The notes: generated from the sequence alone by a model not told the origin. A stretch of DNA of 64,000 nucleotides from Oculina patagonica (GCF_052425735.1 NC_135767.1:16058001-16122000), one strand, 5' to 3'; counted from the stretch's first letter, positions 11,367-41,716 are shown. Program-made: numbers and translations.

Positions 11367-11592
11367 ATTCTACTCCCCCTGAATGGGATGCTAGTCTATT
11401 GCAGGGTTCCCCCCCCCCCCCCCCCCCCAGCATTGTGTCGCCGGTACCCATTTATACACCTGGCTGGAGAGAGGCACTATGAGAGTAAAGTGTCTTGCCC
11501 AAGAACACAACACAAGTGACTCCGGCAGGGGCTCGAACTCGGACCGCTCGATCCGGAGTCCGGCGCACTAACTATTAGGCCACCGCGCCTCC
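11367..11592 (-). mobile_element. tRNA-derived SINE (CORE-like central domain)
   Basis: Reverse complement has A box TGGCCTAATAGTT, B box GAGTTCGAGCC and TTCTTGGGCAAGACACTTTACTCTC core; homologous to 55403-55695. Confidence 0.85.
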
Positions 11593-12620
11593 TAGATAAA
11601 GAGTAAAACACAGTACAGTAAAACGTCAGTTATAAAAAGCCGAATCTATTTTTAAGTACTAGTAAACTCATGCAGTTCTTCAGACTAACAAAAAAACAAG
11701 GCGCCATCCAACTTGAAGTACATAACATGTACAGTAACTGGAACTTCAATGAGCATGGACTATGTATACAAAATAATCAGTGCCTCTTGTTAAGTTTAGA
11801 GAAAAGGTATCAGAAAATGACCGAGATAAATTTTCTCGAGCAAAAAGTAGCTATATATTTTCTTCAAGTTGACCGTCTCGATCCCTTGCAAATATATATA
11901 AACATCGTCCTTGTTTTTTGGTTTGTATTCAAAGCGGTTGTTACATTGTTTTTTTTTTAACAACAATTAACAACAACAACAACCAGACATAAATAGCAAT
12001 AATTACAGCATAAAATAAATTAACTAAAATAAGCAAAAAAAAAAAAAAAAACTACTCAGTATAGAAATAAACTTAACTGGCTGAGTAGTTACACAAATTA
12101 AAATTCGCCATTCTTGTTTCATTACTTTGATTAAAATCTAATTTCTCCTTAAACTGGAGCATATGAGAACACATCAACCCATCAACAAGTAATTTCTTGT
12201 TTTATAAAGTTGAACTTGGCAGACATTAATCTGAAGACACTTCACTTTCTCATACTGAAAACAGGCATGATAAAGCATCGTCTCTCCCAACAAACCTACT
12301 TTTTAGTGTACTTTTACAAGTGGCTTTCCGCCAAACTAGCAAAAAAGCTAACGACTTTTGTGCATAATCCGTGCAATTCATTAGTATAATTGCCTACAAT
12401 AATATAATTTTGCATACACTTGCACGTGTAGTTTTTTCTCATATGATTACTGATTGTTCGTGAGGTTAAATTAAAAGAGTAAAGAGCAGAGTCTTTTTAT
12501 GTACCCTTACACCTTAAACTGATTAAAATTAAGTCGTTCGTAATTATGTTGAGATGTCCCTTGTGCATCATCAGCATCATCTTGCGACAGATAATTCATC
12601 TTGTCAAAACATGTACCGCA

Positions 12621-12762
12621 CTATTGAAATTCATAGACTTCCATGCAAAATGGATCATTGGCTTGAATGTTTTTAGCACCAACGTATGTTGGATTACTAT
12701 GTCCCATGTCGTCATGGGCCGGGTGAGTCCGTCTTTTACGATGTAACGTTGGTTTGGCAAGA
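12621..12762 (-). CDS. Receptor exon 27: cytoplasmic tail with NPxY
   Basis: [46 protein letters not shown]; phase 2 matches exon 26. Confidence 0.8.
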
Positions 12763-15700
12763 CTACAAAGGGAAAAAGGGAAATAAATAAATAAATAAAT
12801 AAATAAAATAAATAAATAAATAAATAAACATAATGATCCATTCTATAGCGCACGAAGACGACATGAAGTTTTTAGACTGAAAAATGCCTCATTAACCCTA
12901 TTCAGACCGGGAGGGGGGAGAGGGGGGGGGGCTTTTGAGGCCCGCGCTGACTTTGAACTCTTATACCTTTTTTAAGATATAACCAAACGCTGCCAAACTT
13001 TTTGAGTTTTCCTAAAATTTATCTGGCAATAATTTGGTAGTGTTGGATGATGTGTCAGGAACTTGACATCACCATGGCAACGGCATTTTGACAGTCATGA
13101 TTTCCCAAATTTGTAATTTTGCGTGTTTCTGTTAATAAAAAATAACAACTTAAATGGAATTATTTTTTACATTTTTGCGGGTGGTTCTCTGGCATTTTAG
13201 AAACATTTTGAAATCCAAGATGGCGGATCCAAGATGGCGGCTGTTTTGACATCATGATATATTTGTCACGTGATGTGACGTCACCATCCCACGTGACGTA
13301 TACCAAAAGGAAGATGTTCGGACATACAATACATCCCACAAGCTCCCCCCCCCGGTCAGAGAAGGTCCAAAAAAGCCCGGTCTGAATAGGGTTAAGTTGT
13401 ACGTGATCACGCTAGTTATAGCTATTTTAGGCGACTTTGTGAAAGAAAACTACAAACATGGTCTTAACTACCGCTGAAAAAAGTATCTCTTTTAATTTCC
13501 TGATCTGCTGTTGACGTGGAAAAAAGGAGTTGGGAACAGACCAGGTTAATGCAACATTGAGTTGGGGCAAGAGGAATTTGTCGACTCATTCTGTCTAAAT
13601 TTAAAGCTGACAATGTTTTAGTTAACACCAATCGATCAAATAAAATTGTCCGTAAAGAGATCTGTCAAAAAGTCAGAACCAGTTTTACTAAAATTGTAAC
13701 AAAGGTAGAAAGGTCTGAGAATATCTAACAATGCACACAGGTACTACAGCGAGTCTACATTATTTTTCTTTTCTTTCACTAAACACTGGTACTTGTTCTA
13801 ATTAACTCACACACAGTGCTTCCGCACACAAAAGATGGTGACACCAGTCAGCGCTATAAATACGAGGACTCCCGTTGCAATGGCTAAATATAGAACCGGC
13901 TTGGAAATATCCTGTCTTTCAGAGTTAGACCAGCTGGGAATTTCTGAAAGTAAGTAATAAAGAAGTGATGAGTAGATGATCCACAGTTAAAAAAAGGCGT
14001 GTTGGATTTGTCATGCTAACTTATTAGGACACAAATAAACTTAAAATTAATGCCGACAGCTATTCTTGTGCAACAACTTGAAAGTCATGGAATACTATTA
14101 CAGTGATTCTAAACCGTTACGATAGTTTTCTTATCGAAATGTGAATGACCTAAACCAATAAGATAAATTATTGTTAAATCAGCAAATAAACCAGCAAATA
14201 AAACTGTAATTTTCGAGTGACCTTGACAATTTTCCCGCCACTTTGATGCTGTTTGTCCAAAAGTCGTTGTCCCGGTTGGACAAGAGACACAGGAGGTCTG
14301 GGCCTCTTGATCTTGGTATTGATCCACTGCACATGCCTGGCAACCAGAAGTGTTGAAGAAATAACCAACCGGACAGTTTACTAATAGGAAGAAATGTAAA
14401 GCAATGGAAGTGGTATTAACACAGGCGGCCCAAGCTCACGATAGGCGAAACGTGACTCTCTCCTGGTAGCATATGGAGGTGTTGTGTTACAACGATTCGT
14501 ATTTATAAAGGTCTGTATGGGAGAAAACGCTTTCGAATTTATAGCTAAATATAATGATATTTTGACAATAAAATCAACTTCCCTCGATGTCTTGTTGTTA
14601 TATCTGTTGTTATCTCGCTTCTCAGGCCGATCCGAAGCGTTTTAAGCGAGTTATGCCATTTCGGGTTTCCACTGCTAAGAAGAAGGGTGGGTCACTCCAT
14701 TTTGAGCCAGAAGGAAGGGGTGGGTCGCAAATTTTCGCGCCACCACTTTTCCAATTGCTCCGGCCCACCCCCCCCCCCCCCCCCCCCCCCCCCCTGGTAC
14801 TTATATATATTGACCAGTCCCTTAAGATGCTAGGCAAAAGTTTTTATTCGCCGAGTTTGAAGGATATGTAGCTGGGCTAGAAAGCGTTCAGTTACGTTTT
14901 TAATTTCTCATACATTTGTCTATATTTTTTTCCGCAAATTGACGTGGTTCGCGGGAAATATTATAGACAAATGTATGAGAAATTAAAAACGTAACTGAAC
15001 GCTTTCTAGTCCAGAATTTACATCGGGAAAATCAACAACTCAAAACAAAGCAAAAACGTCCTATCGATGCTGTTAGTTCGGGATATGTATAACCAGTTTT
15101 AAGGTCGGAAAAAAGAACGGGGAAAAACAAAGAAAACAGTCGATTAATGAGTATAAAGACACTATTAAATTGTCATTATTATACATTGGTGTCACCAGCT
15201 TGATTTTGATTGGCTATAAGCACGCAGCTAATTCTTGCTTGCTGTTTCTCTTACGTCATACCTACAGACATTAGATTTTACATATGTAGAAGTGACGTCA
15301 TACCTACAGACAATAGTTTTATGCATTCAGATTTTGCAGATTTTGTGCAGATTTTGTGCGCGCTCTTGTCTTTACAAGTGCAGCTCAGGAATGTGCATAA
15401 TAAAACAATTATTGGATTCGGTTTTCGCATGATAGCGATAATTATCAAGGCCTCAGTTTCTGTTATCCGCCTCAGCCTTCGGCTTCGGCAGATAACAGAA
15501 ACTTTGGCCTTGATAATTATCGCTATCATGCTCAACCTCATCCAATAATTGTTAATTATTTGTCACTTCCCACTTCTGAGGCCCTGTTAGGGGTTTTGGG
15601 GATGAGGGATAACAGGATTAGTTTAAGGGATAATTGAAAAGAAGCTCTGTGACTTCCGGGCTTTGTTTTTAGCACACTCAACTTGTCTTGTTTACACTTT

Positions 15701-18700
15701 TGCTTAATTTCTTTTACACCCTTGATCGGTTATCGGTCTTCATGGACGCTGGCAGATCGCAAAGAAGCATTGATGGTTCATCTTTTTTTTCACATTCCTC
15801 AGCTAAGGTTAACAAAGACATCGATACATAGATCAAAAAATATTTTTTTCTGCCCGTGGCTTGTTCACAAGCTGTAGAATTGACAGAAATAATTTTTGAA
15901 TGGCATCATATCGAAAAAGAAAGAAAAAAACTCAAACATTTCTTACCCAGGGTCGTAACTAGCAAGAGGCAAGACGAGCAGTTATGTCCAGGATTGAACG
16001 CAAGTATTGTGTAATAAGTACTTCATGTTTGACTGTGTTATTTGACATTTCCATATTACTTCATATTTGACAGAATTTGTTGTATTTTGGTGAACTTTTA
16101 TTAACGAGGACACTTTGTGATGCCTGTTATGAGGAACGTGCATCTCATTAGCGTTCAATCCTGGACATATCTAAAGACGAGGCACTTGCCTCGTCTAGAT
16201 TTTTACCCAAAATTAAAAACAAAATATGTTTTGTTGGGAAAATAATCACCAGTTGAACAAGATTGATTTTTCTCGAGAAATTCCTCATGAAAAATGTCTC
16301 TGGAAGAGTTTTAGAGCTTCTAGTTTTTAAAATGTTCTGGAGGGTGTGCCCCCTGAGCCCCCTAGCAAGATATTGCATCGTCTATGGCAAAGGTCTGGTT
16401 ACGGCCCTGTTACCAATTTTGTCAAGTGCAGATGCAGCTGAAAAGGTACACTATGCCGTCAGCGAATCAAGGTCAATGTTAAATCTTCAGAGCATGAAGA
16501 AACATTGACTGACCTTTTCGTGCAAAATAACCTCTTTATCGACAAAAAGCTGGTCACTAATCGATAGCACGTATTGATGGCTGTCTAGGTATTTTGCAGA
16601 TAATTGGTAAGAATTCGTCATCAAACTACAAAAGAAGACCATTATTTCTCATTTTGCCTACAGCACTTAACCCAAATCTCAGGAATGATTCTTTGGTGGC
16701 TTGTGCTCAAACAACAAGAACTCAATATTGAAAAAGAAAAAGGTTCTTTTATTTTACTTTCAAATACCGCGAATATTTCTAGTTTCTTGAGGAACGGTCT
16801 GAAAGGGATATAATAACGGCTGTCTTAGCTGAAAATGTCTTTTTTCACTCTTGATAATCATTACAAATACGATTTCACTTTTCTGTACGGTGATAACTCT
16901 ACCAGACATACTATTAGGGATAACGCTGGTGATACTTTAAGGGATAAGTGATAACTGTGCTCCGAATTAAAGGGATAAGGGATAACTGAACCCCGCCCCC
17001 CTCCCCCTAACAGGGCCTCACTTCTAAAAAGACCCTCAATAATTCTCTTTCAGTACGTAGTTAACTTGCAGGGGTTGTTTACTGCTTAACGTAACCGAGT
17101 ATAAAGAGGAAGACATTACAACTCCTTACCACATTTTGTCCCTCTTTGAACTTGTCCTTTATTACAAGCAAGACCGATAAAGTGAAATACTGGTGGTTTT
17201 GATGCATCGTATTCTATAACAACTCCGCTGATGTTAAGATTCAGGTCTGTTTCATTCAAGGCCTTTAGTATGCTCTTTGATATTTGTAGAGTTGTCTGGT
17301 TGAGGTCAACCACAGGCGCGTTACTCGGTAGTGGAACTTTTAAAGCAAAATACACAGTAAGGGAAAGTTTGGAAGTTTGGCTGTCACTGGCTGCATCTCG
17401 TCTCCGACGTGCTTCGGTTTGGTTTTCGCCACATACAACCATTACGTTGTCGATCGTGCATTGACTATTACAGCCTCCAGCCATACCAAACGGGGAATTC
17501 TTGAAAATTTCTATAAAGTTACTGGCGATGACTTCGTTCATGTCTTCTCCGCCACACTGGTCAACTAGATAATGGAGATTTCCATTCACCACGGCCTCTT
17601 TAGGCTCGTCCGCTTCTGTAATAAGAAAAAATACCAATTTTAAACGGATACTTAATGACGATGATGATGATGACGACGGCGGTCACATAATAATGAACAT
17701 GGTCATGATGAATTTTTGTGACGAATTTTTCTCCATGCTTGTTACTTAAAAAAATAATAATAAAAATAAAAAGAACTATAACATGTGAAGGGCTGATTGT
17801 TTAGACCAGTGGGTTTACAGAATAATGTATTATCTTACTTGAGCAATCCGGAAAGGCTGGCGTTTTCTTTCCTGGCACCTTGGCATTTTGCCATGTTCCG
17901 TCTGGGGTACAGTGGTAAAGTGGATGGGGTTCATTGGCGAATGCAAAACCTTTATTACAGTGCACGGTGCAAAACATTCCAGTTAACCATGTTTCGCATG
18001 CCTTGGCACCATTCAGAGGTGCTGGTAAATCGGGGCAGGTATAATCTTGTGCAAAAAAAGACAAATAAACCATGTTAGTTAAAAAAAAAAAAATCACGGG
18101 AGTTCATTATTAATAACGCAAGTAAACATTTTTCTCTATCGCTGCATATCGGAAGAGCCCCTCGTTTCATCTTTTAATCACCGCACTTCTGCCATATGGT
18201 TAGTGGTTAGGCGCCTTGGATTTAAAATCTGGACTGAGGTCCCTGGCTCATATCTTCCTTCCTGTTATTGAATCTGAATCGTTCAAAGTAGACCGAGCTC
18301 AACCCAGATGGCGCATTGTAAATAGCCATCTGGTTAGACTAACGCCAGTTACGATTTTTTTATAATTAACGTTTCGTTTGCATATTTGTTTGTTTGTTTT
18401 TCTTGCATAATCATTTGTTCCCTGTTCAGTCCTTTCAACATCATTACGTTGAAAGCCCTTAAATTACTTACCCACAACAATAACTTGAAAATGGCACTTG
18501 GCAGTGTTTCTTGCTATATCTGATGCAGTATATGTTATGTTGTGTTTTCCCCATGTAAACTCGCTTCCATTTGGACTGCTTGTGGTAAATGAGTGAACCC
18601 CAACATTATCAGTGACAGTAACTCCAGGTAGTACGACCTTAGTCATACGATCTTTAGTAGTAATGTGAATATCGTCAGGACAAGAAGCGATCTTAGGTGG

Positions 18701-21700
18701 CTCAAGATCTGTGCACAAGAAGCATTAACTGTACTGCATTAGAGCGGTTAAACGGCAAAATGTAAAGCCTAAATAAAACGTCTTCAGTCGAAAAAGAAAT
18801 CATAGACACGAGCTTCACAATTCCATTGCAAGGACTCGCGCTACCAAAAGGGAGCCTCGCAAAGAAGCTTTCGAATTTTTGGGCAAATAAAAAAATATAT
18901 AACTTCTTTGTATAAAACAATAAAAATGAATTAAGCTAAGCGTTCTGTTTCAGACATGTTATGACATATAAATTGGTGAACCAAAGTGCTATACATATAT
19001 GGTGCTTATTTAGTTACTTTGGACACATTTCCAAGGAAGTTAGATTGCAAAGTTGTAAATTAAAACTTTGGTCTTATTATCTCCTACAATAAGAGGTGAA
19101 ATATGTAAAGCAACATCTTTAAAGGTTAAGTCGACATATATTTTAGCATTAGCGGATGCAAAAATGCGTACCTTTGACATGAACAGAAAATGTACAGCTC
19201 CTACTCAGCCCAGCTGAATCGGTGGCATTGTATGAAATGTACTTTTTGCCAACTGTTATCTTCTGTGGTGGCAGCAAACCAGAGAGACTCACGGGCTCGT
19301 TAGAATTGTCGGTAGAAACTGGAACCTGCCACGTCACTCTTGCGTATGACTGTCCAGGTTGTGTAGGAGTCTCCATATTACTTGGGCATTGAATGCTGGG
19401 AGGTTGGACATCTGTTATGAAAGGAGTTTGTAATAATAAGAGTTTGTGATTTAAGTTAACTGTACTCTTTTTACAGAAAGCTTAATAAGTTGAATGTTAC
19501 ACGTTTCGGGGAACCAAGCCTCTAGGTTTGGTGGTTGGGTAGGGCTGATAACCCAAACCGTGAAAAACTTCTTATTACGGAAACCTGGAATATTGTGGAA
19601 ACAAAAAAAAACTCTTTTTATTTTATAAGAATCTAGTTTATAAGAATATCGAGGCTGAAATTTGCGAATTTTTAAGAATATTTTAAGAATAAACCCGAGG
19701 CTGAGATTTTGAAAAGAATGTAGTTTTTAGTTGAAACAAAATCTGGTATTTTCATTTCCGTCACTTTATCTCGGTGAGGAATGCTTTGTTTAAAGCCAAG
19801 GCTGCAACGAAAACCAATGGTACATGTGCACAATGAAACACGATACAGATCTGGACACCAAACACTTGTAATTGATTACCCAATACTTGCTAAAACGGAA
19901 ATGTCAAACGGAATGTTCTAAGAATGTTCATAAGAATATTTTCAGCCTAAAATCGGCAGAAAAATAAGAATATTCAGCCTGGGTCGGAAAAACTGTATTC
20001 TTATAAAAAAAAAGAGTGTAGGCTGGAACTGAATCCCATCAATGTTGGCAGAGGGCTAGCAACGCCGGATGAAAGTCAACGCGGAAACACAGCGACCGGT
20101 GAGGTAACTGGTAATGCTAAAGTTGTTTCACTATGATAGTGCACTGGTATATGGACTAAAAGTCATTAAGTGCTTATTGACCAATAAAGAAAATAAGATC
20201 TAAGCACTAGATTATGATACATTTCGGACCTTTACAAATCGTCTTTGTAGTATCTGCACTCCATGATCCGCTTTCAAGGCAGGATACGTTCCTTGTGCCT
20301 TCCAGTCGGTAACCAGCCGTGACATTGCACATAAAGAAGCAATGTGTTTTGTAATTTACACCAGACGTTAACTTGCATTGTGTGGGGAAGACCAGTCCAT
20401 GAGACGGCGTTCCAATGGCTGGACACTTAACAACTGAAAGAAAAGGAAACGCAAATTCACGATACTCAACCAATACGTCAGAAGACGTTTTTTTAAGTAC
20501 CGAGTTAGAAAAATATTTATATCACAGAGCGTTTGGTTTGGAAACAATTACTATAAAAAATGAACAAATTATTTTTATCTTGAACGATGTATAATTTTTG
20601 TCAAATGTAAGAAAAGAACAATGGTGATGCTTAGACGAAACCTTTTTCGTGGCATACTTTAATAATTCATTGTTAGGGGAACTCAAAGAAGTGATCGTAC
20701 GTCTTCTCATGCGAGAACAAGGCTCCGTATAGAAACACTTTTCATATATTATAGCAAAGCTTCTGAATAATGAGTAGCAGTCCGTTAATTAATTAACAGT
20801 GCTACAAGAAATTCCAGTGTTATATTGGGAATTATAAAGAACGGAAATTAACTGACTTGCAGGCGTGCTTACTGTTACATATAGAAGTGTTGCCTGACCA
20901 GGTCCCATCTGCTTCACATGAGCGCTGGTTAGACCCAGTCATTCGGTATCCTGTATCACAAGAGAGGGAAGCCTGGGAACCAAATGAGGATCCACATGAA
21001 AGAGAGGTTATGGATCCGTATATTGGCGATTGAAGGGCAGTACACGATTTTCCTGCGAAATAAAGTTTATACTTATGTTTAGTTTCCTCGTTTGTTTAAA
21101 CAATGGAACAGTGGGATCTCGAACTCCCCGCTATCTCGAACAAAAAGTCATTTTCATGGTCGTATCTTTAGGTCATTTACTGTAAAAATAACCCATTTAT
21201 CATCCCCGCTATCTCGATCAACTCTTCGTTTCCCTTTAGAGTTCGACATGGCGGTTTGTACCTTTGTCAAAAATATGTCAACAATATTAAAGTTTGCGCG
21301 CATGGAATGTGCCGATACTGCATTACATGAAACCGCACTAAATTTTAGTACTCCTTAAAGGTGGCCGTAAAGATATTACACCCGAAACGTTGTTGTTATG
21401 TTTATGATAATAACTTTTTTATGAAGAAATCGATTTTTAGTTTTTGAAAAAGATGAAAGCTTTTCAATATTATTTTACTGATTGTTATTGCCGCGCATAC
21501 ACAATCTTATGTTATTGACTGGTACGGTGTAGGCCCTTTACTGCATGTGCTAAGTATTGTGATTTCCCTATTTAATATTTATATATGATAATTAATTAAA
21601 CACGGAAAGAATGACCTACTTGCTACTTGTACGATAAAAGTGCAGTTGGCTCGGTTTCCACTGCTGTCCGTCGCGGAATACTTTATATTGTAGAGACCAA

Positions 21701-24700
21701 TACTAAGGTTAACAGGAGGTCGAATGTCAGGGTAGCTGATAGACACGTGACCAGAGTTGTCATTAGGCACTGGTTCATTCCACAATATTAAAGCACTTGA
21801 CGAACATTTAGGAGGGTAGAACACCATATTGTTTGGACATGTGTCATTGAACGAAGGGCGGATATAGTCTGTAAACGATGAGAAAACAATATATTTCGAA
21901 AAATCGAGTAATCTGTTTTTTCAATATTTTGTAATTTACATGAAAGGTTGAAACAAGACAACGAGAAAAGGCGTCGGATGGTAAGAATTGGTAAAGAATA
22001 GGAAAGAATAAGATTGACTTCGAACGACAAAGTTAAAGTGTTTTAATTGACGTGGCGTGCTAAACTAAGGCAACTAAACTAAACTGAATTGAACTTAGCT
22101 GCACTGCGATACAATGCATGCATTGCTATGCACTGTGATAAACAGAACCTTGCTGATGTGAACTTTTCTTAACAAAACAAACAACAAAAAAAAACACTTG
22201 TTTGGGTTACATCACTTTACCTCTGCAACGCGTATCATTAGACCCCGTCCACTGTCCGTAATTGCCGCATACTCGTGTAGAGGTTCCTTCGAGAACATAT
22301 CCTGGTCTTTGACAAGTGAATCTACATGTCTGGCTATGATTACTGCCAAACAAACACGAATCTGGAGAAATGGTGCCAAACGTAGGAGGGTCCAGTGGGC
22401 CACAGTTGATGACTAAACAAATGGAGAAAAAGCGCAGGTGTTGTTTAAAATTAAGACTATCCCGTAAAGCGAAACTTTTGAACTTGATGTACTCAACTCT
22501 TGAATAATGTACAACGTTCCTGTTTCTGATATTAAAGTTTCTTCATTTGTTTACTTAACAATTATTCTATGAGCCCGCGTTGGATACGAGGTGGTAAATA
22601 GCCAACGAGGCGCGAAGCGCCGAGTTGGCTATTTACCACCTCGTATCCAACAAGGGCGAACAGAATAATTGTTTTATTAAATTCTTCTTTAAGTTTAAAT
22701 CGACTGGACATTTCAGTTTGATGTAAACGAAGTGATAGTATGAGGAGGCGGGAAAATTTGTGGCGTGGTGTTCACTTCTTGAGTTGAATGAAACACACGA
22801 GGAAAGCGAGCGAGAGAGTTTTCTTTCCAAGATTTTCATCCAATAATCTCCTCTAAAGTCGTCTATATATCCTGGAAATTGTGACAACAGTTAAGATTTA
22901 CGGGATGATCCGAAGCAAAAGCTTTTCTGTAAACTACACGTCTTGTGCAAGTAGAACGAAGCAAGTGTTTACATTGTACTTGTAATTTACGGCTCCATGG
23001 CTTTCATCAAGACTGCTAAATTGAGCTCAAAGTGGAACGGGTTTATTGAAGTATTAAAGGACAAGACCACGATTAAAAGGTAACAAACTTTACAGAAGTG
23101 CTGAGCCACATTTTGTGACGTACATGAATGAAACTGTGTCAGTTTGCCGTTCTTTCGTAAATTATTTGCTGCTTTTCTACTTTATTCACTTGCTCTTATT
23201 GTGCGTTTAAAAGTATTATTAATTAAACTTTTCGCATCAATTCTTTTGTTTTGCGTAGTTAATTTTACTTTGGCATTTCTGTGGTTTTTGTAGGCACCGC
23301 TGATTATTTCATGTTCATAAAGCTCGCCAAATTTGCTGTTTTCAACGATTTTCTGATGGAACTGTCGCTTCCCGCAGAAAAATTTTAAGCTGAGCGGCAC
23401 TTGCCGCACTCATTTCCCATATAAGGTCAAACATAGGTATACGAGCTGATAACCGGGATTCAGTGAACCAATCAGAAAGCTAGAAATGCAATATCCGAGG
23501 TTGAGAATTTAATAAACTGAAATATACTGTAAAAGAGATGCTATTACTGGTGTGACTTCGTTTTGCTGCTTAACAGTGTGAACCTGAGAAGGTATATGGT
23601 ATTAGATGTAAATTGTAAATGTAAATGTTGATGTATAAAAAACATGAAACATCCCACAGCTTTTAATGTAAAGATGTGTTGCATTCTCACCTTGACAATA
23701 CGTCGTTTCTCCACTCCAAGTCTAGCCAACGTTACAAGAAAAACTGCAGTGTGTATCATAAGGTTCAGATAAGGGGTCAACACAGCCAATCTTTAATCCA
23801 TTTACTGGATCAGTTAGAGACAAACATCGTATAGCTACGGATCGATGAATAAATAAATAAATATCTAAATCTGTACAGAATCCTTATGCGTTACTTACAT
23901 AAACACTAACATTTCGTACGTTATCAGGCCGGAGCTTAGGCCCGGCCTCATAAGAACCAAAGTGCTCTACCCATGAAGGTAACTGCACGAACCATTAAGC
24001 CACTGTGCCTTTTAAAATTAAAAATAAAGTGTCTAAATAAATAATAAGCAAATGTTATAATGGATGCCTTGTTAGGGACCAGTGATTATGTAGAGGGGAG
24101 GGAGGGGGGGAGGGGAGGGGGGGGGGGGGGATTTGTTCAAATGAAGGGATGTTCAAATTCTCCTTGCCCACCCCTTCTAATGTGCGTGCAAAAATTTATG
24201 TATCCCCTCTCTTCCAACCCTCTAAATGTAGGACAATGTAATGACTGGTCCCTTAGTTCACCGTGCTTGTGGTCTCCGCATGATAAACGCCATTTAATTA
24301 AAATAAAATGGACGTGTTATTTGTGTGTTTCAGACCGTAGGCATACTTTTTTTGCATAACATACCTTCGCATTTAGGTAAAGGTTTGTCCCAGAATCCAG
24401 GAGGTCTGTTGCCAGGAGCAACACACGTGACTGTTGACGAGCCATTCAAACGATGACCAATCGTACAAGAGAAGTTACATTGTGCTCCAAAATAATTACC
24501 GCAGCTGCTCATGATCAGTGGACCTCGCGTATTTTCCGTCAGTAATGTGCAGTTGATAACTGATGATATTAAAATAATAACGGACATATTTTTTTTAATC
24601 AAACCATCTTGTTGGTCAGTGTTTCTTTAGAACTTTATATCCCAAAGAAAATTGACACCGGCTGGCTATAAATCGTTGTCATTGCCACGCAACAAACATA

Positions 24701-30700: not shown

Positions 30701-33700
30701 ACCGTCAATCCGCGCTACTTCGACTTTACTTGTCCCTGCATCAGTCCAATAAACATTTCGTCCAATGTAATCCACTGCCAGACCATCAGGGATGTTTACA
30801 TTGTCATGCGCAAAGATCTCGACTGAAGTACCGTTGGGAAATGCCCTAGCAACCAGTTTTAAGGTCACATCTGTCCAGTAAATTTTGTTTTCAACTGGAT
30901 CATAATCAATAGCCACAGGTCTTGATATGTTTGTGGTGATTTCCAGTGGATAGCAGGGGGTTTCCGGCACTGTGAGGGGAACTTTGTAAATTTCCCCGGA
31001 ATTAGCTTCAGCAAAAACCATAAATTTTTTAGAGCTTCTCTTATAAAACAAACCTTGCATTGAGATAAAAAAAGAGAAATAAAGCTTTAAACTAATGATT
31101 AAATATTTAAAGAATATGTCAGTATCTCATGTAGGCAAGAGGTTGACGGAAGATTTTTTTTTTGAATCACTCTGCAGTAAATAACGAGGAAAATAAATTA
31201 TACAGTGATATCCTTTAAGAGCAGATAAGGGTAAGGAATATGTATCTAATGCATTTACTGATAGATTAAAATCTGGACACGAGCTGTGAAAACCCATCAC
31301 AGTTTTTCATAGTCTGGAAGAATAGATCGGTAGCATTTGTGTACCACAGCTCATTTGTTTAACCACCAACCCCCATCCCCGAGTGTCTCAATGGGGTTAA
31401 CCGTTAGCCGTAAAATGGCGAAAATTTTAGCCATTAAGCGTAAAAATTGGAACATTTTAACCGTTGGCCGTAAAATAATTATGTTAACCGTAAAAAATCG
31501 GTCTGTAATTATAAATAAACCAAACTAGTTCACTTCATCGTCCCAGAATGGCCCTGACACCTAAAATATGTTTTTCAATAATGGAAATTAATTTTTAACT
31601 TTTAAAAACAATGAAAATTAACTTTTAACTTCTGTTAACCGTTTTGGAAATAAATTAACCGTTAGCCGTAAAAAAAGCCAAAATTTTAACCGTTAACCGT
31701 AAAAGCCACCATCCCATTGAAACCCTCATCCCCATTGTCGTGTTCTAAAAATTAAACAGAGCAGAGACCAGAGGAGAGAGGGATTTTCTTTTTACACGCT
31801 TGTTAGCCAAGACATTTGTAAGGTGTGTTAAACTAGTTTGTCTTAACTAGATTTGACCAGAGTTGTCGCTAGTTACAAAAAAAAAAGACACAAGAAAGAC
31901 GCGTGAACCTTGAAGCATCAAACTTATGCACACACTGTACATACAAAACAAAACAAAACAAATTAAAACAGGCACCACAACCGTGCATTCCAAACCTGTC
32001 GTTTAAGTAATATACGTTCTCACCGTAGTCACAGTTTTTTCCATCAGCCTTGAGAGCAATACCCGTTGGACATGCGCACTGGTATCCCCCTGGCTTTAGA
32101 AGACACAAATCGCTGCAGAGTCCATTGTTTTGAGAACAAACATGAGAACCTAAAGACGTAAAAAGAAAAAAACTGACACAATAGCCAACGTTTTATACAT
32201 CAACTGAATATCGTTAAATGACTTCGAGACCTTCAGAACGAAATTACAAATTCGTCAAGGTTCCTTTGTCTCGTAATTTTAAGAGGAGACCAACTTCGTT
32301 GCCAGGGTTCAATGACCCCGTGAACGTGGTTGAGATGAGACATGGATGCAGATCTCGGAAATACAGAAGGTTGTCCTAAAAGCCTCGAACTTTTGTTGGA
32401 ATTTTGATATATTTGACCCTGACTACAACAATTACATCACTGATAAGCGAAATTTTCAAATTGCTTCATATGTGCACTTGAGGCTTTATATCCAGAAAAA
32501 AGGAATCGTGTGCTAAATCGTGCTTGTCTATTGGTCCTTATGCACGTTTTTCACCTCTTTTCATTATAAAACGGCTCTGCAGACGTTTTGTTATTTTGCG
32601 TCCGTTTATATAATTATACAGTATGTGGACCTAAATCCGGACAGCCCTCGGTCCGGACACTTTTGGTTTATCGGGCATTTTTCCGATAGGAAACAAAGTT
32701 TTAATAAAACCGAACCTTTCCAAAGATTTCTTGTTCTCTTTGCTGTCTAAACTTCGCTCGAAGGCTTTCCTGCTGGCGGTGAAGTCGAGATTTTCAAGTC
32801 GACGTGAAGGTAGGTGAATTTTTTTTCGCGATGTTTACTTATTCATGGCTCCTCAAATTGGTTTACTTTATAATTCCTGTATATCCGAACTGAGCGCACT
32901 AAAAGAGGTAATTTTTGATAGAATTGATGTATAGGAAATATTGATGTATAGGAAATATTCTTTGGACTAGTGCAAAAAATTTGATTGGCCACTTGAGTTT
33001 CCGTCCAAAGTAATGGATTAAAATTTTTTAAGTAATTTTCCTGACTAGGTCCGAGGTCCGGACACTGCCGGCAACCAAATATAACTTAAAGACTTCTGAA
33101 GGTGGCAAGATAAATAATACTGTAAGATAGAAAAGGAGTCTGACGAAAGTTACAAATTTCGTTTGAGTTCTAAGATATAATGAACTTCAGTTTACAAGAA
33201 TAATACTACTTAAACAAGGAGTTTTATTCAAACTTTGCAAATCACGCTTATCAGTCTAATAAGCGCTATAGTTTATATTCACTGTATATTGTTGATGAGA
33301 CGAAAGAAAGCTCTCTTCCCTATTTTTTTTTCATTTCATTTTTCTGAATTTCACTAAAAATGTGCAAGGAGCTTCTTTAGATTGGATTTTGAAGAATTGC
33401 TGGGTAAATATTTCGTGCTGTCGGACCAAGGACCAACTTTCCGGACCAAGGGCCGTCAAACCGAACCATCGTTTTCGATGTTACTGTTGTCTTTTCACAT
33501 GTTACTGAGTCAAGCTGGATGTTACGGTAACTTACAGGACAAATCTCAGCTCACTGCTCTTCTAAGAAATACACATTCGCGTCTTTTTCGTCCGGACCAA
33601 GGCCACGCACTGTAGTCCTTATATTATAAGGACTTGCAGTTGCATTGGCACATATGGTGCTTCCCCCGTCTTCATGCGGAAGATTGTTTAGACGACTGCA

Positions 33701-36700: not shown

Positions 36701-39700
36701 AAGGAATTGTTACATTTGTTCGAGCAAATTTGAAGTGAAAGTTGCAAGTTGCGTCGATCAAGCTGTCAATCAATATTGTGACATTGCACCATAACACTGC
36801 AAAGTTCCCATCAAAAGACCACCCATTTTTACTGTAAAAGATAATTTTCTTACTGTCTTTGCATGTCTTTCCGTCCTGCTTCACAGCTAAACCGGTAGGA
36901 CATACACATTTGTAACCAGTTGTCTTCGCTACACAGAAATGGCTACACCCTCCATTGTTTACAGCACAAGGACTTGAAGCTTTTAAAAAAACACAGTATA
37001 AAAGAAAAACAAATGTTATAACGGAGCTAGTTAAGCTGCGCAGTTAATTATAACTTCACAATACGTTAGTGCTCATCATAATGCTACCGCAGATCGTAGT
37101 AAAACAGTATTTTCGGCCACAAAAAAAGATATCCTACATTTTCCTAGACTCATACAAACCAGTTTACCCAGAATGTGCTCTGGCTCTCCCCTTTTTTAGA
37201 AGAGAAAGCAAACAACTACACTGTCCCAAAGGTTTTGTTTTAGTGAACAAAAAAAGAAAAAACCTTCAAGGCCTACCCATGTATCAAACAAAAAAGGAAC
37301 GTTAAAGCAGAACCAGCGCCAGTGCCATTTCATCTACGAATCGTCATTTATTTCGTTTAAGCCCACTTTCCCCCAATTGTGTGTATAACCACTACAAAAC
37401 AATGAGAACAGTGCTGACAGCAGGGACAGCATGATTAAGATTTAACATGTTTAAGAGCGATTCGTAACGCGATAATCACAGGCTTGTATTTTCCCTTAAT
37501 CGAATTGAACAACGATTCACAGGCAAACAAGGATAATTAAGAATTTAATTAAGATCATTCTGACGGAAAACATTGTGTTTTTATAACCGTGTAAAAATTA
37601 TTGTCTTCTCTAACCAACCAACCAGCCAACCTATCAATCAATCGAACGATCGATCGATCGATGGTCATTCAATGAAAAATAAAAGACTTCTTTTTTTCTC
37701 ATGGAGGCAAACGCCTTGAAGTTTCGATTACTCTTGTTCCGAAGTTAGCACGAAATCTTCCGAAGTAGACAAAAAATCTTCCAAAGATTTCCGAAGTCGA
37801 CTCGAAGTCTTCCGTCAATTTACGAAGTGACCCGAAGTCTCACGAAGAAGATTTTCAAAGTTGACATGAAGTATCCCAAAGTGTTTCGAAGTTGAACCGA
37901 AGACTTCCGAAGATTTCCAAAGTTGATCCGAAGAGTTTTGGAGACTTCCGATATATGCCCGAAGACTAACGAAGATATCTAAAGTATACCCGGAGTATTC
38001 TGAAGAAGAAACGAGGAATTGTAAATCTTACAAATATGCTCGTTATTTTGTTAAGTATATTATAAATAAAATATCGAACGAGCTTCTCGTACCATTCGTG
38101 ATAAAATAGCTAAGAGTGATGTTTTAAAAGTTTGCAATTAAAAACATCACTCGTACCTATTTATCACAAATTGTGCGAGAAGGTCTTGTCATTTCCCATA
38201 CATATACCTGCAGGCTGTCGTGAATTGTCGTACAGTACGATGCCCATTGGCCGCCCGCCATTGATGCTGTAACTACGGAGCACTTTCCCAGTTGTGGCGT
38301 CCAGCTGGTGAACCTCCTTATGTGTATTCCAATCGGTAAAAAACAAGAAAGGAGGAATCAGTGCTACTGCAAAGGGATGTAAACCACTTTGTTGAAAAAG
38401 CTGTTTCCTGTTGTTGCCATTGTAGTCGACAGATTCTACTCTGTCTTTTCCAGCATCCACCCAAAAGATGCGTTTGTTTCCTTTGTCAAGCTCAATACCA
38501 TTTGGCCAATAGAGGTCTGTTGTTACGATGGCGAGTCTTTGGTTTCCACTCAGTAAGGCTCTTTCAATTTTTGGATTAGCGCCCCAGTCAGTCCAGATCA
38601 TTAAGCTGTTAAATAAGTTAATTAATGGATCGATCGATCAATAAAAGAACCAACCTACCAATCGATCAATTCAAACAATCAATAATAAGTGAACGACAGA
38701 GCGAGTGAACGAACTACTGAGGACAAGTCGTACACAGGGTACGCCTCTGAAAGGATAGTCCCCGTAGCATATGCCTATAAGACCCTACGAGGTATGCTTT
38801 TGTCAACATGGATCCCCTCGATAGTTCACATCACGCTATGAGCGTTCACTTTTCTTATTATCAAAGATCTCTTCGAGATATCGACTTTTTTGCATGAAGT
38901 TAGTATGAGTAGAAGGTTTATCCTGGGCATTGTTGTTCGAACATATCATGGAAGAATTCAAACGTCTTTCAGTTCAATCATTTTTTTTTTATTTTCGCGG
39001 AGGAAATGCTGTATTTGTCAGTCGCGACGGCTGGGCGCTTTGCGACTCATATACTTTGGGTTGGTTAAAAATGGTAAACTTTGACGTTTGCCTTAAATCG
39101 AAATAGCTGTTTCCTTTCGAGTTAGAAAGATTTCTACTCGGCTAAATGCAGGGTTCCCGATAAAGGTTACGCACGACAGAGCTACCTTTTGTCTCGTCAC
39201 GCAATCTAAACCCCACATTTAGAAGCAAATTTTCGTTAGGATATTACCAAAAGCCGCTTCTCCTCGCGTTATTCTTTACCTTACGGCTACACATGCCATT
39301 TCTAACGACTACATTTCCAGTAAAACAGTTGCCGTTTTTTTTCTAATGGCGATGCATTAACTTCTGAACAGAGGCAAAAACTTTTAGCGTTTACTGCTTC
39401 CACCGGAAGTAATTTCACAACAGGCTACAAAAACACTTGTAAATATCACTTCACACCTGCATTGAATGATGTTGCAATTCTAAATTGTGCAACTCGGGAG
39501 AAATAATCAATTGTCACGAAATGAGTTCCCTTTGGTTAACTATTAGCAACGTTTTAGTGAGTGAAAGACTTGTACCAGTACAAATTTGCGTTGTAAATCG
39601 TTTTAGGTTAAGTTAATATTAGTGCCTAAAGACTTGTACCATTACAAATTGCGTTCTTATTCGTTTTAAACTTCGTTGCCTTCGAGCGCTGAACCCTTCA

Positions 39701-41716
39701 CATTCTTAATTGGTTATGTCACGTAAGATTTGGGCTACTCACGTTTTTAATTCTTATATAACGTTTGTAAATTTGACAAGTCACGTTTTTTCTACAAGAA
39801 CGGAAGTGTTGAAGCACAACTATAGAGTGACACTTTACAAGTCACGCGCTTTGATCACTCACAGCGGAAAGTATTTCCTTGAGAAATTAAAACAGTCCCT
39901 TGAAAGTATACAAGAATGTGGTTCGAGATAGAACAACTTGTCCACTATTCTCCTTTTCTTCTTGCTTGTAAACAAGTAAAAAAGTCGAAAAAATAGTAGT
40001 ACATCAGTTCACACAGCCACAAATATAAACAGTAAGCCACTTTTTTTTCCGGCAAACATTAAGGGTGTTTAAATTTCCTCCAAGAACAAACCGCTGCTGT
40101 AATATGTGACCATTTTGCATTTGACAATAGCACTACTATCACTTACCCACTATCGGGATCCAAAGCTATTGCTCTGGGTTCCTCCAGCTCTGAGGAAATA
40201 AGACTACGTTGGTTATTGCCATTTAGGTCTGATACTGATATTTTGTCGTATGTTGTATCAGTCCAATACAACTGGGTTGTTCTCCATTCCACCGCTAGTC
40301 CATCGCAAACTCCAATACCAGTAATAATTGTTGTCGTGCTTGCAATGTCAATGTGGAAACGTTTGATGTTTTTCTCTGATACATCACTCCAAAATATGTA
40401 TCCCAAGCTGAAATGAACATCTAGTGCCACGGCTCTTGTTAATCCCAAAACAACCGAATTTACAGCTGACGTTTTGTAGTCGACGGTAACGATATCCGAG
40501 GTGTTCGATACCAGTAAGCAAGGTGGACTGCACAACTTGGCTAACATTGACGCAGAAGGAAAAGAAAGGGGAAAAACAACTTCAGGCTAACAAGAATATC
40601 TGTGTAGAGACAACCTGACACGCTGGGGTAGAGGATGATAAAATAGGTTTAAGCAGGAGATAAGTTTCTGATGTAAATTCCCATAAGGCGAGCAAAAAAT
40701 ATGTGTAAAAATATTAAGTTCCTCTAGTTCGAGCATTTTGAAGTGGATCAAGCTATTTTTGTACTTTTCTCTCCTAGTAGGCTGTTCACCATTTAATAAG
40801 CGAATATCAAATAAAGCAATATCATATCGGAATGTTTGCAAAATCAAAGGTATGTTCTATTTTGTTTGCCTTTTTTTTAGTGAGTGTATCGAAACCTCAG
40901 TGCGTAAATTTCAAGTTGTTTCATTCGGCAGAATAGAGCAGTTGGAAAATAAATTTTTCAGATGTTTTGCAGTGTAGCCTCACTGAATAGCTTTACCTTT
41001 TGTCTGTACTTTGTCTTGCTCTGCAAACTTTATTTGCAGTTTAAACTTTATTTCAATTTTGCAATTTCCTTTACCCACAGGCAACCTTGTCTCCTGCCTA
41101 ATCAGTACGTAAGTACGCAAACAAAATAAAGCAATTGGAAAATAAAAGTTTCTCGGCCTGATGGATTTACCAATTTCTCTTACTTGTGGATGTTTGGCTC
41201 GCGCCCGCCTTCGGCAGCTTCGCTATTAAGTGACATATTCTTAATTATTTTTTTAATTACTGGCAAAATTGACAGGAAAGTGATTTTGTGTCACTACATT
41301 GTGTTTACTTAATCTTAATATTTCTTAAAGTGTATAATTAAAAAACCACATCCTTGATCCTTTAAAGTATTTTTTTTAGGTAGCAATAAAGAGAACAAAG
41401 AGTTCTTTCCGCCGTTTTACCTGTCAGGGCGTATTTTTTTAAAACAAAATACGACACACACAAAAAAAAAGATCCGAAATGCTGGCGTCTCATAACAGAA
41501 GATTTATAGCTTCAGCCATTCTACTTGTCAGGGCGTTTTTTCTAAAAGAATATGAGACAAGCTGGCGCCTTGAAAGAAGATTCATGTTCAGTGGCCAATT
41601 GCTGTTTTAATTATTCATAGTTTATTTATAATCAGTTTACCGCCATAAACTTGCACACTTTTCTTCATCGTTAACAAATGCACGGACAGTGCATATATCC
41701 ACCAAATAACACTCAT
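12621..41716 (-). CDS. Type I transmembrane receptor: SP-(YWTD propeller-EGF)x3-CCP/HYR stalk-SEA-like-GCC-TM-NPxY tail (LRP-like head on SVEP1-like stalk), about 2096 aa if exon 16 is skipped
   Basis: 27 phase-compatible exons: 41716-41641, 40540-40147, 38605-38208, 36979-36854, 35167-34762, 34158-33764, 32149-32024, 31053-30630, 29794-29397, 28737-28609, 28102-27929, 26704-26519, 26180-25998, 25820-25569, 24559-24365, [23834-23691 has stop], 22412-22221, 21868-21620, 21052-20873, 20433-20230, 19411-19172, 18708-18472, 18045-17839, 17615-17130, 14380-14222, 13943-13811, 12762-12621. Confidence 0.88.
12783..12830. repeat. (AAAT)n microsatellite
   Basis: About 11 tandem AAAT units. Confidence 0.9.
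12896..13391. mobile_element. piggyBac-type MITE
   Basis: TTAA|CCCTATTCAGACCGGG ... CCCGGTCTGAATAGGG|TTAA; perfect 16-bp TIR and TTAA TSD. Confidence 0.9.
13811..13943 (-). CDS. Receptor exon 26: transmembrane helix
   Basis: [30 protein letters not shown]; tttcag| acceptor, |gtgagt donor. Confidence 0.85.
14222..14380 (-). CDS. Receptor exon 25: Cys-rich GCC2/ephrin-receptor-like repeat
   Basis: [40 protein letters not shown]. Confidence 0.9.
14872..15014. repeat. Near-perfect palindrome (about 55-bp arms)
   Basis: ctagaaagcgttcagttacgtttttaatttctcatacatttgtctata vs tatagacaaatgtatgagaaattaaaaacgtaactgaacgctttctag. Confidence 0.9.
15176..15556 (-). mobile_element. Hairpin-headed non-autonomous element
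   Basis: 150-bp hairpin 15404-15553, subterminal IR ttattat(a/g)ca, CCAATCA near distal end. Confidence 0.7.
15578..17019. mobile_element. Non-autonomous TIR element with 6-bp TSD, carrying two nested MITEs
   Basis: ACTTCT|GAGGCCCTGTTAGGG ... CCCTAACAGGGCCTC|ACTTCT; AGGGATAA subterminal repeats; nested 15948-16409 (TTACC TSD) and 15985-16167 (TA TSD). Confidence 0.85.
17130..17615 (-). CDS. Receptor exon 24: SEA-like domain with furin-type site
   Basis: ...[16 protein letters not shown]...LTVYF...; ends with C.KGQV.RGTKC leading into the GCC repeat, as in SVEP1-like proteins. Confidence 0.85.
17839..18045 (-). CDS. Receptor exon 23: sushi/CCP
   Basis: [14 protein letters not shown]...CNKGF...YHCTPDGTW...PDCS. 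Confidence 0.88.
18472..18708 (-). CDS. Receptor exon 22: HYR
   Basis: [14 protein letters not shown]...TDNVG...YTASD...[10 protein letters not shown]. Confidence 0.9.
19172..19411 (-). CDS. Receptor exon 21: HYR
   Basis: [12 protein letters not shown]...[12 protein letters not shown]...[17 protein letters not shown]. Confidence 0.9.
19610..20020. mobile_element. MITE with ACTCTTTTT..TATAAGAAT termini
   Basis: actctttttattttataagaat vs attcttataaaaaaaagagtgta; internal TAAGAAT repeats. Confidence 0.65.
20230..20433 (-). CDS. Receptor exon 20: sushi/CCP
   Basis: [12 protein letters not shown]...GYRLEG...SCLESGSWS...CK. Confidence 0.88.
20873..21052 (-). CDS. Receptor exon 19: sushi/CCP
   Basis: [11 protein letters not shown]...[30 protein letters not shown]. 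Confidence 0.88.
21620..21868 (-). CDS. Receptor exon 18: HYR
   Basis: [12 protein letters not shown]...[11 protein letters not shown]...[19 protein letters not shown]. Confidence 0.9.
22221..22412 (-). CDS. Receptor exon 17: sushi/CCP
   Basis: [12 protein letters not shown]...[28 protein letters not shown]...CR (frame not in ORF track). Confidence 0.88.
22555..23515 (+). mobile_element. Hairpin-headed non-autonomous element
   Basis: Hairpin 22557-22673; subterminal IR ttattaaattct (22674) / agaatttaataa (23504); AACCAATCAG near distal end. Confidence 0.75.
23691..23834 (-). pseudogene. Receptor exon 16: internally deleted sushi exon with in-frame TAG
   Basis: [47 protein letters not shown]; TAG at 23724-23722; intact tag|/|gtgag splice sites; 144 bp vs 174-207 bp for sibling exons. 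Confidence 0.8.
24075..24252. mobile_element. PIF/Harbinger-type MITE
   Basis: TTA|GGGACCAGTGATTA ... TAATGACTGGTCCC|TTA. Confidence 0.7.
24365..24559 (-). CDS. Receptor exon 15: sushi/CCP
   Basis: INC...[17 protein letters not shown]...GFW...PKCE. Confidence 0.88.
25569..25820 (-). CDS. Receptor exon 14: HYR
   Basis: DVLPPTF..CP...[13 protein letters not shown]...[19 protein letters not shown]. Confidence 0.9.
25998..26180 (-). CDS. Receptor exon 13: sushi/CCP
   Basis: VSCPPL...CVFGCQSGY...TCLQSGQWS...C. Confidence 0.88.
26519..26704 (-). CDS. Receptor exon 12: sushi/CCP
   Basis: [12 protein letters not shown]...FSCKVGF...CTENGTWSG...C. Confidence 0.88.
27060..27500 (+). mobile_element. 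Degenerate CR1/L2-like LINE ORF2 fragment
   Basis: [39 protein letters not shown]...PYFDY with frameshifts. Confidence 0.8.
27595..27777. other. Assembly gap (N run)
   Basis: 183 N. Confidence 1.
27929..28102 (-). CDS. Receptor exon 11: sushi/CCP
   Basis: [10 protein letters not shown]...C.LSCDVGY...C...GTWTG..P.C. Confidence 0.88.
28609..28737 (-). CDS. Receptor exon 10: EGF
   Basis: [26 protein letters not shown]...TCE. Confidence 0.9.
29257..29376. mobile_element. Short palindromic Harbinger-like MITE
   Basis: ggccagggccaaacgtcgagcttca..gtcgaacctaatgca vs tgcattacgttcgac..tgaagatcgacgtttgacccaagcc; TTA/TAA flanks. Confidence 0.65.
29397..29794 (-). CDS. Receptor exon 9: propeller 3, C-half
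   Basis: MYWSDWG, LYWCDA, LYWSDW. Confidence 0.92.
30630..31053 (-). CDS. Receptor exon 8: propeller 3, N-half
   Basis: [22 protein letters not shown]; acceptor position chosen for phase (AAG). Confidence 0.88.
31381..31727. mobile_element. MITE with GAG...CTC ends and 6-bp TSD
   Basis: ATCCCC|GAGTGTCTCAATGGG ... CCCATTGAAACCCTC|ATCCCC; internal TTAACCGT repeats. Confidence 0.85.
32024..32149 (-). CDS. Receptor exon 7: EGF
   Basis: [37 protein letters not shown]. Confidence 0.9.
32617..33614. mobile_element. Tc1/mariner/pogo-type non-autonomous element
   Basis: TA|CAGTATGTGGACCTAAATCCGGAC ... GTCCGGACCAAGGCCACGCACTG|TA; TCCGGAC subterminal repeats. Confidence 0.65.
33764..34158 (-). CDS. 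Receptor exon 6: propeller 2, C-half
   Basis: [27 protein letters not shown]. Confidence 0.92.
34762..35167 (-). CDS. Receptor exon 5: propeller 2, N-half
   Basis: [22 protein letters not shown]. Confidence 0.92.
36221..36563. mobile_element. MITE with about 63-bp TIRs and an internal 55-bp tandem duplication
   Basis: aaccttaaagatgcaaatttccactt...ttagacaggcgttctcaa vs ttgagaacgcctgtctaa...aagtggaaatttgcatctctaaggtt. Confidence 0.8.
36854..36979 (-). CDS. Receptor exon 4: EGF
   Basis: [41 protein letters not shown]. Confidence 0.9.
37738..38005. repeat. Degenerate (TT)CCGAAG minisatellite, about 11-bp period, adjacent to hairpin 38060-38185
   Basis: About 20 copies of C(C)GAAG-like motifs. 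Confidence 0.8.
38208..38605 (-). CDS. Receptor exon 3: YWTD propeller 1, C-half
   Basis: [31 protein letters not shown]. Confidence 0.92.
40147..40540 (-). CDS. Receptor exon 2: YWTD propeller 1, N-half
   Basis: [27 protein letters not shown]. Confidence 0.92.
41641..41716 (-). CDS. Receptor exon 1: putative signal peptide
   Basis: [25 protein letters not shown] then G|gtaaac, phase 1, joins exon 2. Confidence 0.65.

Follow-up and report, generated by a model that had tools for sequence, protein, structure and literature searches.

YWTD propellers on an SVEP1-type membrane stalk: a tandemly duplicated hexacoral gene family in Oculina patagonica

Receptors of the LDL-receptor family display six-bladed YWTD propellers in tandem, with an EGF module closing each of them, on a single-pass membrane protein, and the combination of YWTD-EGF units with an NPxY tail is the classic endocytic pairing of this family. 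LRP4 and LRP5/6 have four such propellers. SVEP1 (polydom), with which the SVEP1-like proteins of amphioxus, echinoderms and brachiopods are grouped here, is characterised by a CCP-HYR-HYR-CCP-SEA(furin)-Ephrin_rec_like cassette; it is secreted and also carries VWA and pentraxin domains, EGF arrays and about 30 further CCP (sushi) repeats, for a total of about 34. In human SVEP1, an adhesion and matrix protein, the SEA module has been labelled, as has a site of furin cleavage immediately ahead of R997 (PMC13722417). In GPR126 (ADGRG6) and Notch2, furin cuts the beta2-beta3 loop of the SEA domain and the two halves stay together until force parts them (PMC6954182). A gene that joins parts of these kinds lies in the window analysed here, i.e., the whole stretch of 64,000 nucleotides from the stony coral Oculina patagonica (GCF_052425735.1 NC_135767.1:16058001-16122000), from whose first letter positions are counted. 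It runs on the minus strand from 41716 to 12621 and belongs to an uncharacterised, tandemly duplicated family, restricted to hexacorals as sampled, in which a cnidarian propeller head is combined with an SVEP1-type stalk and a membrane anchor.

A propeller head and an SVEP1-type stalk in one gene

The gene model was built from stop-to-stop open frames, among which frame-keeping GT-AG junctions were chosen. It is a single gene of 27 exons, with all junctions of the GT-AG type and all phases consistent, and its coding sequence of 6435 nt (ATG at 41716, stop at 12623-12621) specifies 2144 amino acids. When the exons are compared with Pfam singly, each of the six propeller exons matches Ldl_recept_b, the three EGF exons match FXa_inhibition/EGF, eight exons match Sushi, four match HYR and one matches Ephrin_rec_like; the SEA-like, transmembrane and tail exons give no meaningful Pfam match. 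An earlier sequence-only reading had proposed a signal peptide, three YWTD-EGF units, CCP repeats interspersed with four HYR modules, a SEA-like module containing RRRR, a GCC module, a transmembrane helix and an NPTY tail. The same order is recovered by the exon model together with Pfam, and the architecture is confirmed far beyond chance. One element has to be amended: eight of the nine CCPs claimed are intact and match Sushi, while the remaining one, CCP5, is truncated, contains an in-frame TAG and has no Pfam match. LDLa repeats (PF00057), which that reading had declared missing, match no exon in Pfam, nor do VWA or pentraxin domains, and the PPPSP motif that it had also reported absent does not occur in the 50-residue tail, which was read directly.

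A further question is whether head and stalk are transcribed together, as the reading had supposed. Contigs of four sequencing runs (X1, X2, X4 and X6) from three studies, the runs being probable RNA, were mapped onto 23650-29450, with 24090-24141 and 26824-26877 skipped as repeats. The contigs skip introns precisely where the model predicts, and on the plus strand the skipped stretches have CT..AC ends. Exon 9 is joined to exon 10 (29397/28737) in runs X2 and X4, and exon 10 to exon 11, that is EGF3 to CCP1 (28609/28102), in X1, X2 and X6. Further into the stalk, the joint between exons 11 and 12 (27929/26704) occurs in X1 and X2, that between exons 12 and 13 (26519/26180) in X1, X2 and X6, those between exons 13 and 14 (25998/25820) and exons 14 and 15 (25569/24559) in all four runs, and that between exons 15 and 16 (24365/23834) in X2, X4 and X6. 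Exons 9 to 16 are thereby joined exactly, and the loose end of one X2 contig, at 23691, continues into exon 17. Since the EGF3-CCP1 joint is present in three runs, head and stalk form one transcript at the contig level; separate transcripts, which would have refuted the sequence-only reading, are not what the contigs show. That two adjacent genes have been read as one, for which only the a priori risk of calling exons from raw sequence speaks, is barely conceivable given this spliced joint, the collinear NCBI models in other corals (among them the Stylophora orthologue) and an identical head-stalk junction in two sea anemones; at the contig level the merger of two genes is rejected.

An assembly gap of Ns (27595-27777) lies within intron 11, between the CCP1 exon, which ends at 27929, and the CCP2 exon, which starts at 26704; both junctions are of phase 1. 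A coding exon hidden in this gap can be ruled out for the transcripts of runs X1 and X2, because they splice 27929 directly to 26704 and because the Stylophora orthologue is collinear across the region. The intronic segment 29286-29371 is very deeply covered by contigs of each of the four runs (depth 89-820), with many loose ends, and is probably a dispersed transcribed repeat. An element made of G-runs or C-runs, which translates as poly-Gly or poly-Pro, recurs in introns and flank (14625-14843, 24058-24195 and 11394-11567).

Exon by exon, the head starts with a signal-peptide-like hydrophobic segment (exon 1, 41641-41716, with the ATG at 41716) that aligns with the N-terminus of the Stylophora orthologue. 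Propeller 1 is encoded by exons 2 and 3 (40540-40147 and 38605-38208; Ldl_recept_b E 1e-14 and 1e-20, 75-81% identity to Stylophora) and followed by EGF 1 in exon 4 (36854-36979; FXa_inhibition 1.5e-14). Propeller 2 occupies exons 5 and 6 (35167-34762 and 34158-33764; Ldl_recept_b 8e-21 and 8e-29) and EGF 2 exon 7 (32024-32149; FXa_inhibition 2.7e-14), and propeller 3 is found in exons 8 and 9 (31053-30630 and 29794-29397; 3e-19 and 2e-19), with EGF 3 in exon 10 (28609-28737; 1.8e-12) closing the head. The stalk opens with CCP1 in exon 11 (27929-28102; Sushi 5.8e-9), with contig joints on both sides, and continues with CCP2 and CCP3 in exons 12 and 13 (26704-26519 and 26180-25998; 3e-9 and 3e-7), HYR1 in exon 14 (25569-25820; HYR 4.8e-18) and CCP4 in exon 15 (24365-24559; Sushi 1.2e-6), all four of which also carry contig joints. 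The truncated CCP5 makes up exon 16 (23691-23834), with its in-frame TAG at 23724-23722. Then come CCP6 in exon 17 (22221-22412; 6e-7), HYR2 in exon 18 (21620-21868; 1.5e-12), CCP7 and CCP8 in exons 19 and 20 (21052-20873 and 20433-20230; 9e-12 and 2e-5), HYR3 and HYR4 in exons 21 and 22 (19411-19172 and 18708-18472; 1.7e-16 and 1.5e-14) and CCP9 in exon 23 (17839-18045; 2e-5). Exon 24 (17130-17615) is the SVEP1-type SEA-like module, assigned by its fold model and homology to SVEP1, and includes the RRRR sequence at 17398-17409; exon 25 (14222-14380) is the cysteine-rich Ephrin_rec_like or GCC2/GCC3 module (PF07699, 1.4e-8). A linker and the transmembrane helix (13896-13825) share exon 26 (13811-13943), where a hydrophobic run of 24 residues is followed by RKH and aligns with the transmembrane segments of the orthologues. 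Exon 27 (12621-12762) supplies the cytoplasmic tail, in which NPTY is read at 12695-12684 and the TAG stop at 12623-12621.

Distribution of the family and origin of its parts

The Stylophora orthologue is collinear with the Oculina model from end to end, with 67% identity over 2,140 aa. Full-length members, sought with an Actinostola protein and then with the Stylophora protein as queries, were found in Stylophora pistillata (XP_022803615/6, named 'SVEP1-like', and PFX17351, named 'LRP6'), Pocillopora ('LRP6' and 'LRP4-like'), four Acropora species, Montipora and O. patagonica. NCBI predictions of the architecture thus cover at least five genera of stony corals (Oculina, Stylophora, Pocillopora, Acropora and Montipora), and GenBank holds hypothetical or partial models from two sea anemones. 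A 1519-aa protein of Actinostola shows two propeller-EGF units followed by CCP, HYR and further modules up to the SEA-like one, with the same head-stalk junction, and in genomic DNA of Exaiptasia a propeller and EGF are directly followed by CCP/HYR, SEA and GCC exons. Among the 120 best matches to the head, Ldl_recept_b and HYR are combined in stony corals only; Actinostola and Exaiptasia extend the family to Actiniaria. None of the orthologues contains PF00092 or PF00354. At the Exaiptasia locus (LJWW01000006.1:675375-701655), KXJ29306.1 (307 aa, 'SVEP1') is apparently the separately annotated 3' part of the 2245-aa gene called immediately upstream, and the CCP9 and SEA-like exons occur twice.

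Database names for these proteins are LRP6, LRP4-like, SVEP1-like and uncharacterized. Our literature search returned no paper mentioning any of twelve family accessions or locus names, and the accession of the orthologue is absent from the text of the Stylophora cell-atlas supplements. The suggestion that this is an unrecognised, lineage-specific combination therefore stands as regards its lineage restriction in the species sampled and the lack of a paper devoted to it, but not as regards its novelty to the databases, where the architecture is already predicted. Nor does it represent a novel type of molecular machine, since all of its modules and motifs are known ones. Identity to Stylophora is 70-88% in the head, 53-72% in the stalk and 48% in the tail; with the head the most conserved part, the strongest constraint bears on the propellers.

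Taken one by one, the three head units match LRP2, LRP4 and LRP6 structures in the PDB about equally, and in full-length protein comparison identity is about 40% to LRP4 and 39% to LRP5/6, LRP4 scoring slightly higher. A tree of 67 single propeller-EGF units is more discriminating. Propeller 1 pairs with the first propeller of a coral 'LRP4-like' protein that has six propellers and no LDLa (Shimodaira-Hasegawa-like approximate likelihood ratio test, SH-aLRT, 100), propellers 2 and 3 group with propellers 2-6 of the same protein (SH-aLRT 96), and the propellers of bilaterian LRP4 and LRP5/6 form position-specific clades of their own. Under the approximately unbiased (AU) test, a clade uniting propeller 1 with its LRP5/6 counterpart, propeller 1, is rejected (p 0.013), and so is a clade that brings the whole set of head propellers together with the whole LRP5/6 set (p 6e-7). 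On this basis we reject descent of the head from LRP5/6, and the coral propellers are not orthologous to any propeller of bilaterian LRP4 or LRP5/6. Because tree and AU test set the head apart, the description 'LRP5/6-like' in the sequence-only reading did not survive the propeller phylogeny as a statement of kinship; it applies to the general layout only. The nearest relative of the head is the cnidarian LDLa-less protein (Oculina P0114, Stylophora P0180), which differs in its five to six propellers and in a C-terminal region of 550 aa devoid of CCP, HYR or other Pfam domains.

The coral gene shares with the LDL-receptor family the tandem EGF-capped propellers, the single transmembrane segment and the cytoplasmic NPxY motif. 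In contrast to LRP4 and LRP5/6, it has three propellers rather than four, lacks LDLa and PPPSP, and fills the remainder of its ectodomain with CCP, HYR, SEA and GCC modules. No orthologue has LDLa in its precomputed Pfam list, whereas true LRP4/5/6 matches carry it. The absence of LDLa places the gene outside the LDL-receptor family, strictly defined; nor is it LRP5/6 or SVEP1. The succession of YWTD-EGF units without intervening LDLa, as in LRP5/6, and the automatic annotation of several members as LRP6 could evoke a Wnt co-receptor or a Wnt/Dkk decoy of the LRP5/6 kind. We regard such a role as very improbable, since the AU test rejects grouping with LRP5/6 propellers and the protein has three propellers instead of four, no LDLa and no PPPSP.

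The stalk is homologous to the N-terminal third of SVEP1. Residues 1469-2054 of the model are collinear with positions ~430-1060 of vertebrate SVEP1 (26-28% identity, E ~1e-50), which bears out the SVEP1-like stalk of the sequence-only reading, and SVEP1-like proteins of amphioxus, starfish and sea urchin align to the same region. What the two share is the whole cassette with a basic site at the matching place; YWTD propellers, transmembrane helix and NPxY tail are found in the coral gene and not in SVEP1. A search with the SEA-like exon returned 48 representative clusters, mostly exon-sized fragments, and no full-length protein of the window's own gene; the named matches are an Exaiptasia 'SVEP1', hypothetical proteins of Actinostola, an amphioxus SVEP1-like protein and a hyalin of Lingula. 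The basic site is present in almost every homologue, mostly as a full RxK/RR and in a few in weakened form (LRRR, RLKK, SRV), and R72 is nearly invariant. The site is RSKR in amphioxus and RRRR in starfish, takes the form RIKR, RTKR or RVKR in vertebrate SVEP1, and exists in sea urchin too. The furin-type site pointed out earlier in the coral gene is thus both real as a motif and conserved across the family.

An AlphaFold2 model of exon 24, made from a 32-sequence alignment, reaches a predicted local distance difference test score (pLDDT) of 84.6 and shows the order beta1, alpha1, beta2, loop, beta3, alpha2 and two to three more strands. RRRR (residues 69-72) falls in a low-confidence loop (pLDDT 56-62) between beta2 (57-61) and beta3 (83-94), so that the R-x-K/R-R convertase motif would be presented in a predicted exposed loop. 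The best match of an exhaustive structure aligner is the SEA domain of Gpr126 (Z 7.9, root-mean-square deviation 3.2, 107 residues, 8% identity), followed by those of MUC16 (Z 7.1 and 6.5), TMPRSS6 (6.5) and another protease (5.6), but Z values below 8 can reflect merely the common ferredoxin-like arrangement. The AlphaFold DB clusters which share the fold of exon 24 consist of invertebrate SVEP1-like and sushi proteins. Foldseek against the PDB finds no match to the model at E <= 0.001, and Pfam SEA does not match the exon. The term 'SEA-like' can be kept in so far as the exon corresponds to the published SEA/furin module of SVEP1 and the predicted layout fits, and on this modelling the evidence for a SEA fold is suggestive. 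The likeness to GPR126 and to the HD domain of Notch is one of predicted fold, ferredoxin-like and with a membrane-proximal basic site in the beta2-beta3 loop; the sequences themselves show no detectable similarity, and cleavage of the coral protein is a prediction.

Proposed function and condition of the Oculina copy

Across paralogues and orthologues a [FYH]-x-N-x-x-[YF] motif is positioned 20-35 residues past the membrane, in the variants NPTY, NPVY, NPAY, NDAY, NETY, NQAY and NQAF. The NPxY tail announced from the sequence is therefore present, and its NxxY core conserved across the family. Most family tails end in S/T-x-A (SEA, TEA, SNA, SQA), resembling a PDZ ligand; the window copy stops earlier.

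The architecture, the positions of the sites and their conservation are established. From them we consider it probable that the genes constitute a functional hexacoral family of type-I membrane receptors of ~2,160 aa, which arose by exon shuffling and have a ligand-binding ectodomain, cut by furin and held non-covalently, above an NPxY-type adaptor tail. By analogy with GPR126 and Notch, a furin-like convertase would cut the precursor in the beta2-beta3 loop of the SEA-like fold. Head and stalk would then stay non-covalently attached to a membrane stub made of half the SEA module, GCC, transmembrane helix and tail, as in Notch, GPR126 and mucins. The propeller faces would bind an extracellular ligand, the NPxY tail would recruit adaptors with phosphotyrosine-binding (PTB) domains for clathrin uptake or signalling, and the ectodomain could be shed when tension unfolds the cleaved SEA module.

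Beside the weaknesses of the SEA assignment discussed above, several points count against this interpretation. The runs are only guessed to be RNA, and their contigs cannot prove a single molecule extending from exon 1 to exon 27. Many paralogues lack the proline of NPxY (NDAY, NETY, NQAF). Finally, the window copy has a stop codon in frame within CCP5 and a tail cut short, which may compromise this allele.

The same features lend themselves to another assignment, in which the protein serves adhesion or mechanosensing rather than cargo uptake. The CCP/HYR stalk and the cut SEA module would form a force-sensitive tether, as in Notch, mucins and adhesion GPCRs, while NxxY and S/T-x-A would bind scaffolds. 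The SEA/furin topology does match GPR126 and Notch2, most family tails have the PDZ-ligand-like ending, and SVEP1 itself is an adhesion and matrix protein; the union of YWTD-EGF units with an NPxY tail, on the other hand, is that of endocytic receptors. We rate an adhesive role as a possibility worth keeping, at appreciably lower odds than the cargo receptor, and the two are not mutually exclusive. A further variant would make the protein the membrane-tethered precursor of a shed matrix protein, whose head and stalk act in the extracellular matrix after the furin cut, in the manner of secreted SVEP1 or of the cnidarian multi-propeller proteins, and whose stub has no role. Its stalk is homologous to the secreted SVEP1, and a YWTD-only 'LRP4-like' protein has been reported in the skeletal matrix of an octocoral, which we take as a lead only (PMC7853314). 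Against this, cut SEA domains normally stay associated (PMC6954182), and since the transmembrane segment and NxxY are conserved across the family, the stub presumably matters; a purely matrix-borne function accordingly appears unlikely.

How far the window copy is itself intact depends mainly on exon 16, the second repeat of the second CCP triplet. Here about 14 codons including Cys3 are missing and the in-frame TAG appears; the repeat is complete in the Stylophora orthologue. Contigs of X1, X4 and X6 follow the window as far as 23723/4 and part from it there. The loose ends of X4 and X6 continue with ..CNVG-FN[LM]IGSSVRR.., i.e., the missing portion of CCP5, and the X1 contig continues for 463 letters that are unlike the window. 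Because contigs continue into the missing portion of the repeat, the deletion is not in the transcripts, and the lesion may be an assembly error or belong to one haplotype. At the other end of the gene, the stop at 12623-12621 is premature with respect to the orthologues but leaves NPTY in place. Past this TAG, the frame at 12510-12620 on the minus strand encodes ...NYLSQDDADDAQGTSQHNYERLNFNQFKV, in which ...HNYERLNF... matches ...NDYERLEF... of the orthologues; the segment is a diverged remnant of the distal tail which the orthologues have kept.

These defects raise the question of whether the window holds a decaying or null allele within an otherwise functional family. The TAG and the loss of about 14 codons in CCP5, a stop that precedes the conserved distal tail with diverged sequence beyond it, and the presence nearby of at least three intact-looking paralogues would all fit. 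However, each of the remaining 26 exons has an open frame and 53-88% identity to Stylophora, and transcripts with three organism labels carry an intact CCP5 and have 0-2 mismatches in the neighbouring exons; the lesion could be an artefact of assembly or haplotype, and exon 16, being of phase 1-1, could be skipped. On balance we think a null allele rather improbable, and a functional receptor remains our preferred interpretation of the gene.

The tandem cluster and its significance

Of the 11 places in the genome that match the SEA-like module, six lie within C10:16.07-16.36 Mb. Mapping with our own domain profiles, which covered half of the 300-kb stretch in alternate 10-kb pieces, places there at least seven genes with the CCP/HYR/SEA/GCC stalk. 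YWTD heads are found in four: the window gene, another minus-strand gene at ~16.15-16.19 Mb and two plus-strand genes at ~16.32-16.36 Mb, the copies having ~75% protein identity to the window gene. The head-to-head neighbour, which starts at 47007 on the plus strand and extends to C10:16130397, bears an EGF_CA head exon on the same type of stalk.

This neighbour begins with a signal-peptide-like exon and continues with one that combines a W-x-x-W (TSP1-like) stretch with EGF_CA, after which Sushi and HYR exons alternate; the SEA-like and GCC exons are located just past the end of the window. A second assembly gap (54090-54267) lies ~110 nt upstream of one of the neighbour's HYR exons (54376-54735). 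The Oculina model ACROYT_G033860 (3532 aa) looks like two cluster copies merged. Elsewhere in the window, 1698-2948 on the plus strand is an open frame of 416 aa with three tandem copies of ~33 aa (GQWPQPAKVTPPSVHPYKPGP.NMDAKKAAKD) and no Pfam match.

With YWTD propellers in four genes and an EGF/TSP1-like head in the neighbour, the cluster could be imagined as a head-swapping receptor array, in which at least seven genes put different heads on one SVEP1-type stalk with a breakaway SEA/furin tether. Such an array would serve corals and sea anemones in recognising microbes, symbionts or foreign tissue and in taking them up or rejecting them. This is a speculative extension to which we give little credence at present.

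At the level of the family, a group of receptors so far seen in hexacorals only has gone unstudied and is filed under three misleading names (LRP6, LRP4-like and SVEP1-like). Since databases file its members in this way, coral expression studies that report "LRP6" may be reading this gene and not the Wnt co-receptor. The CCP/HYR/SEA(furin)/GCC cassette of SVEP1, together with its basic cleavage site, predates the cnidarian-bilaterian split and has been reused as a membrane stalk, and the tandem array offers a tractable case of exon shuffling in animals that rely on cell-surface recognition of symbionts and microbes.

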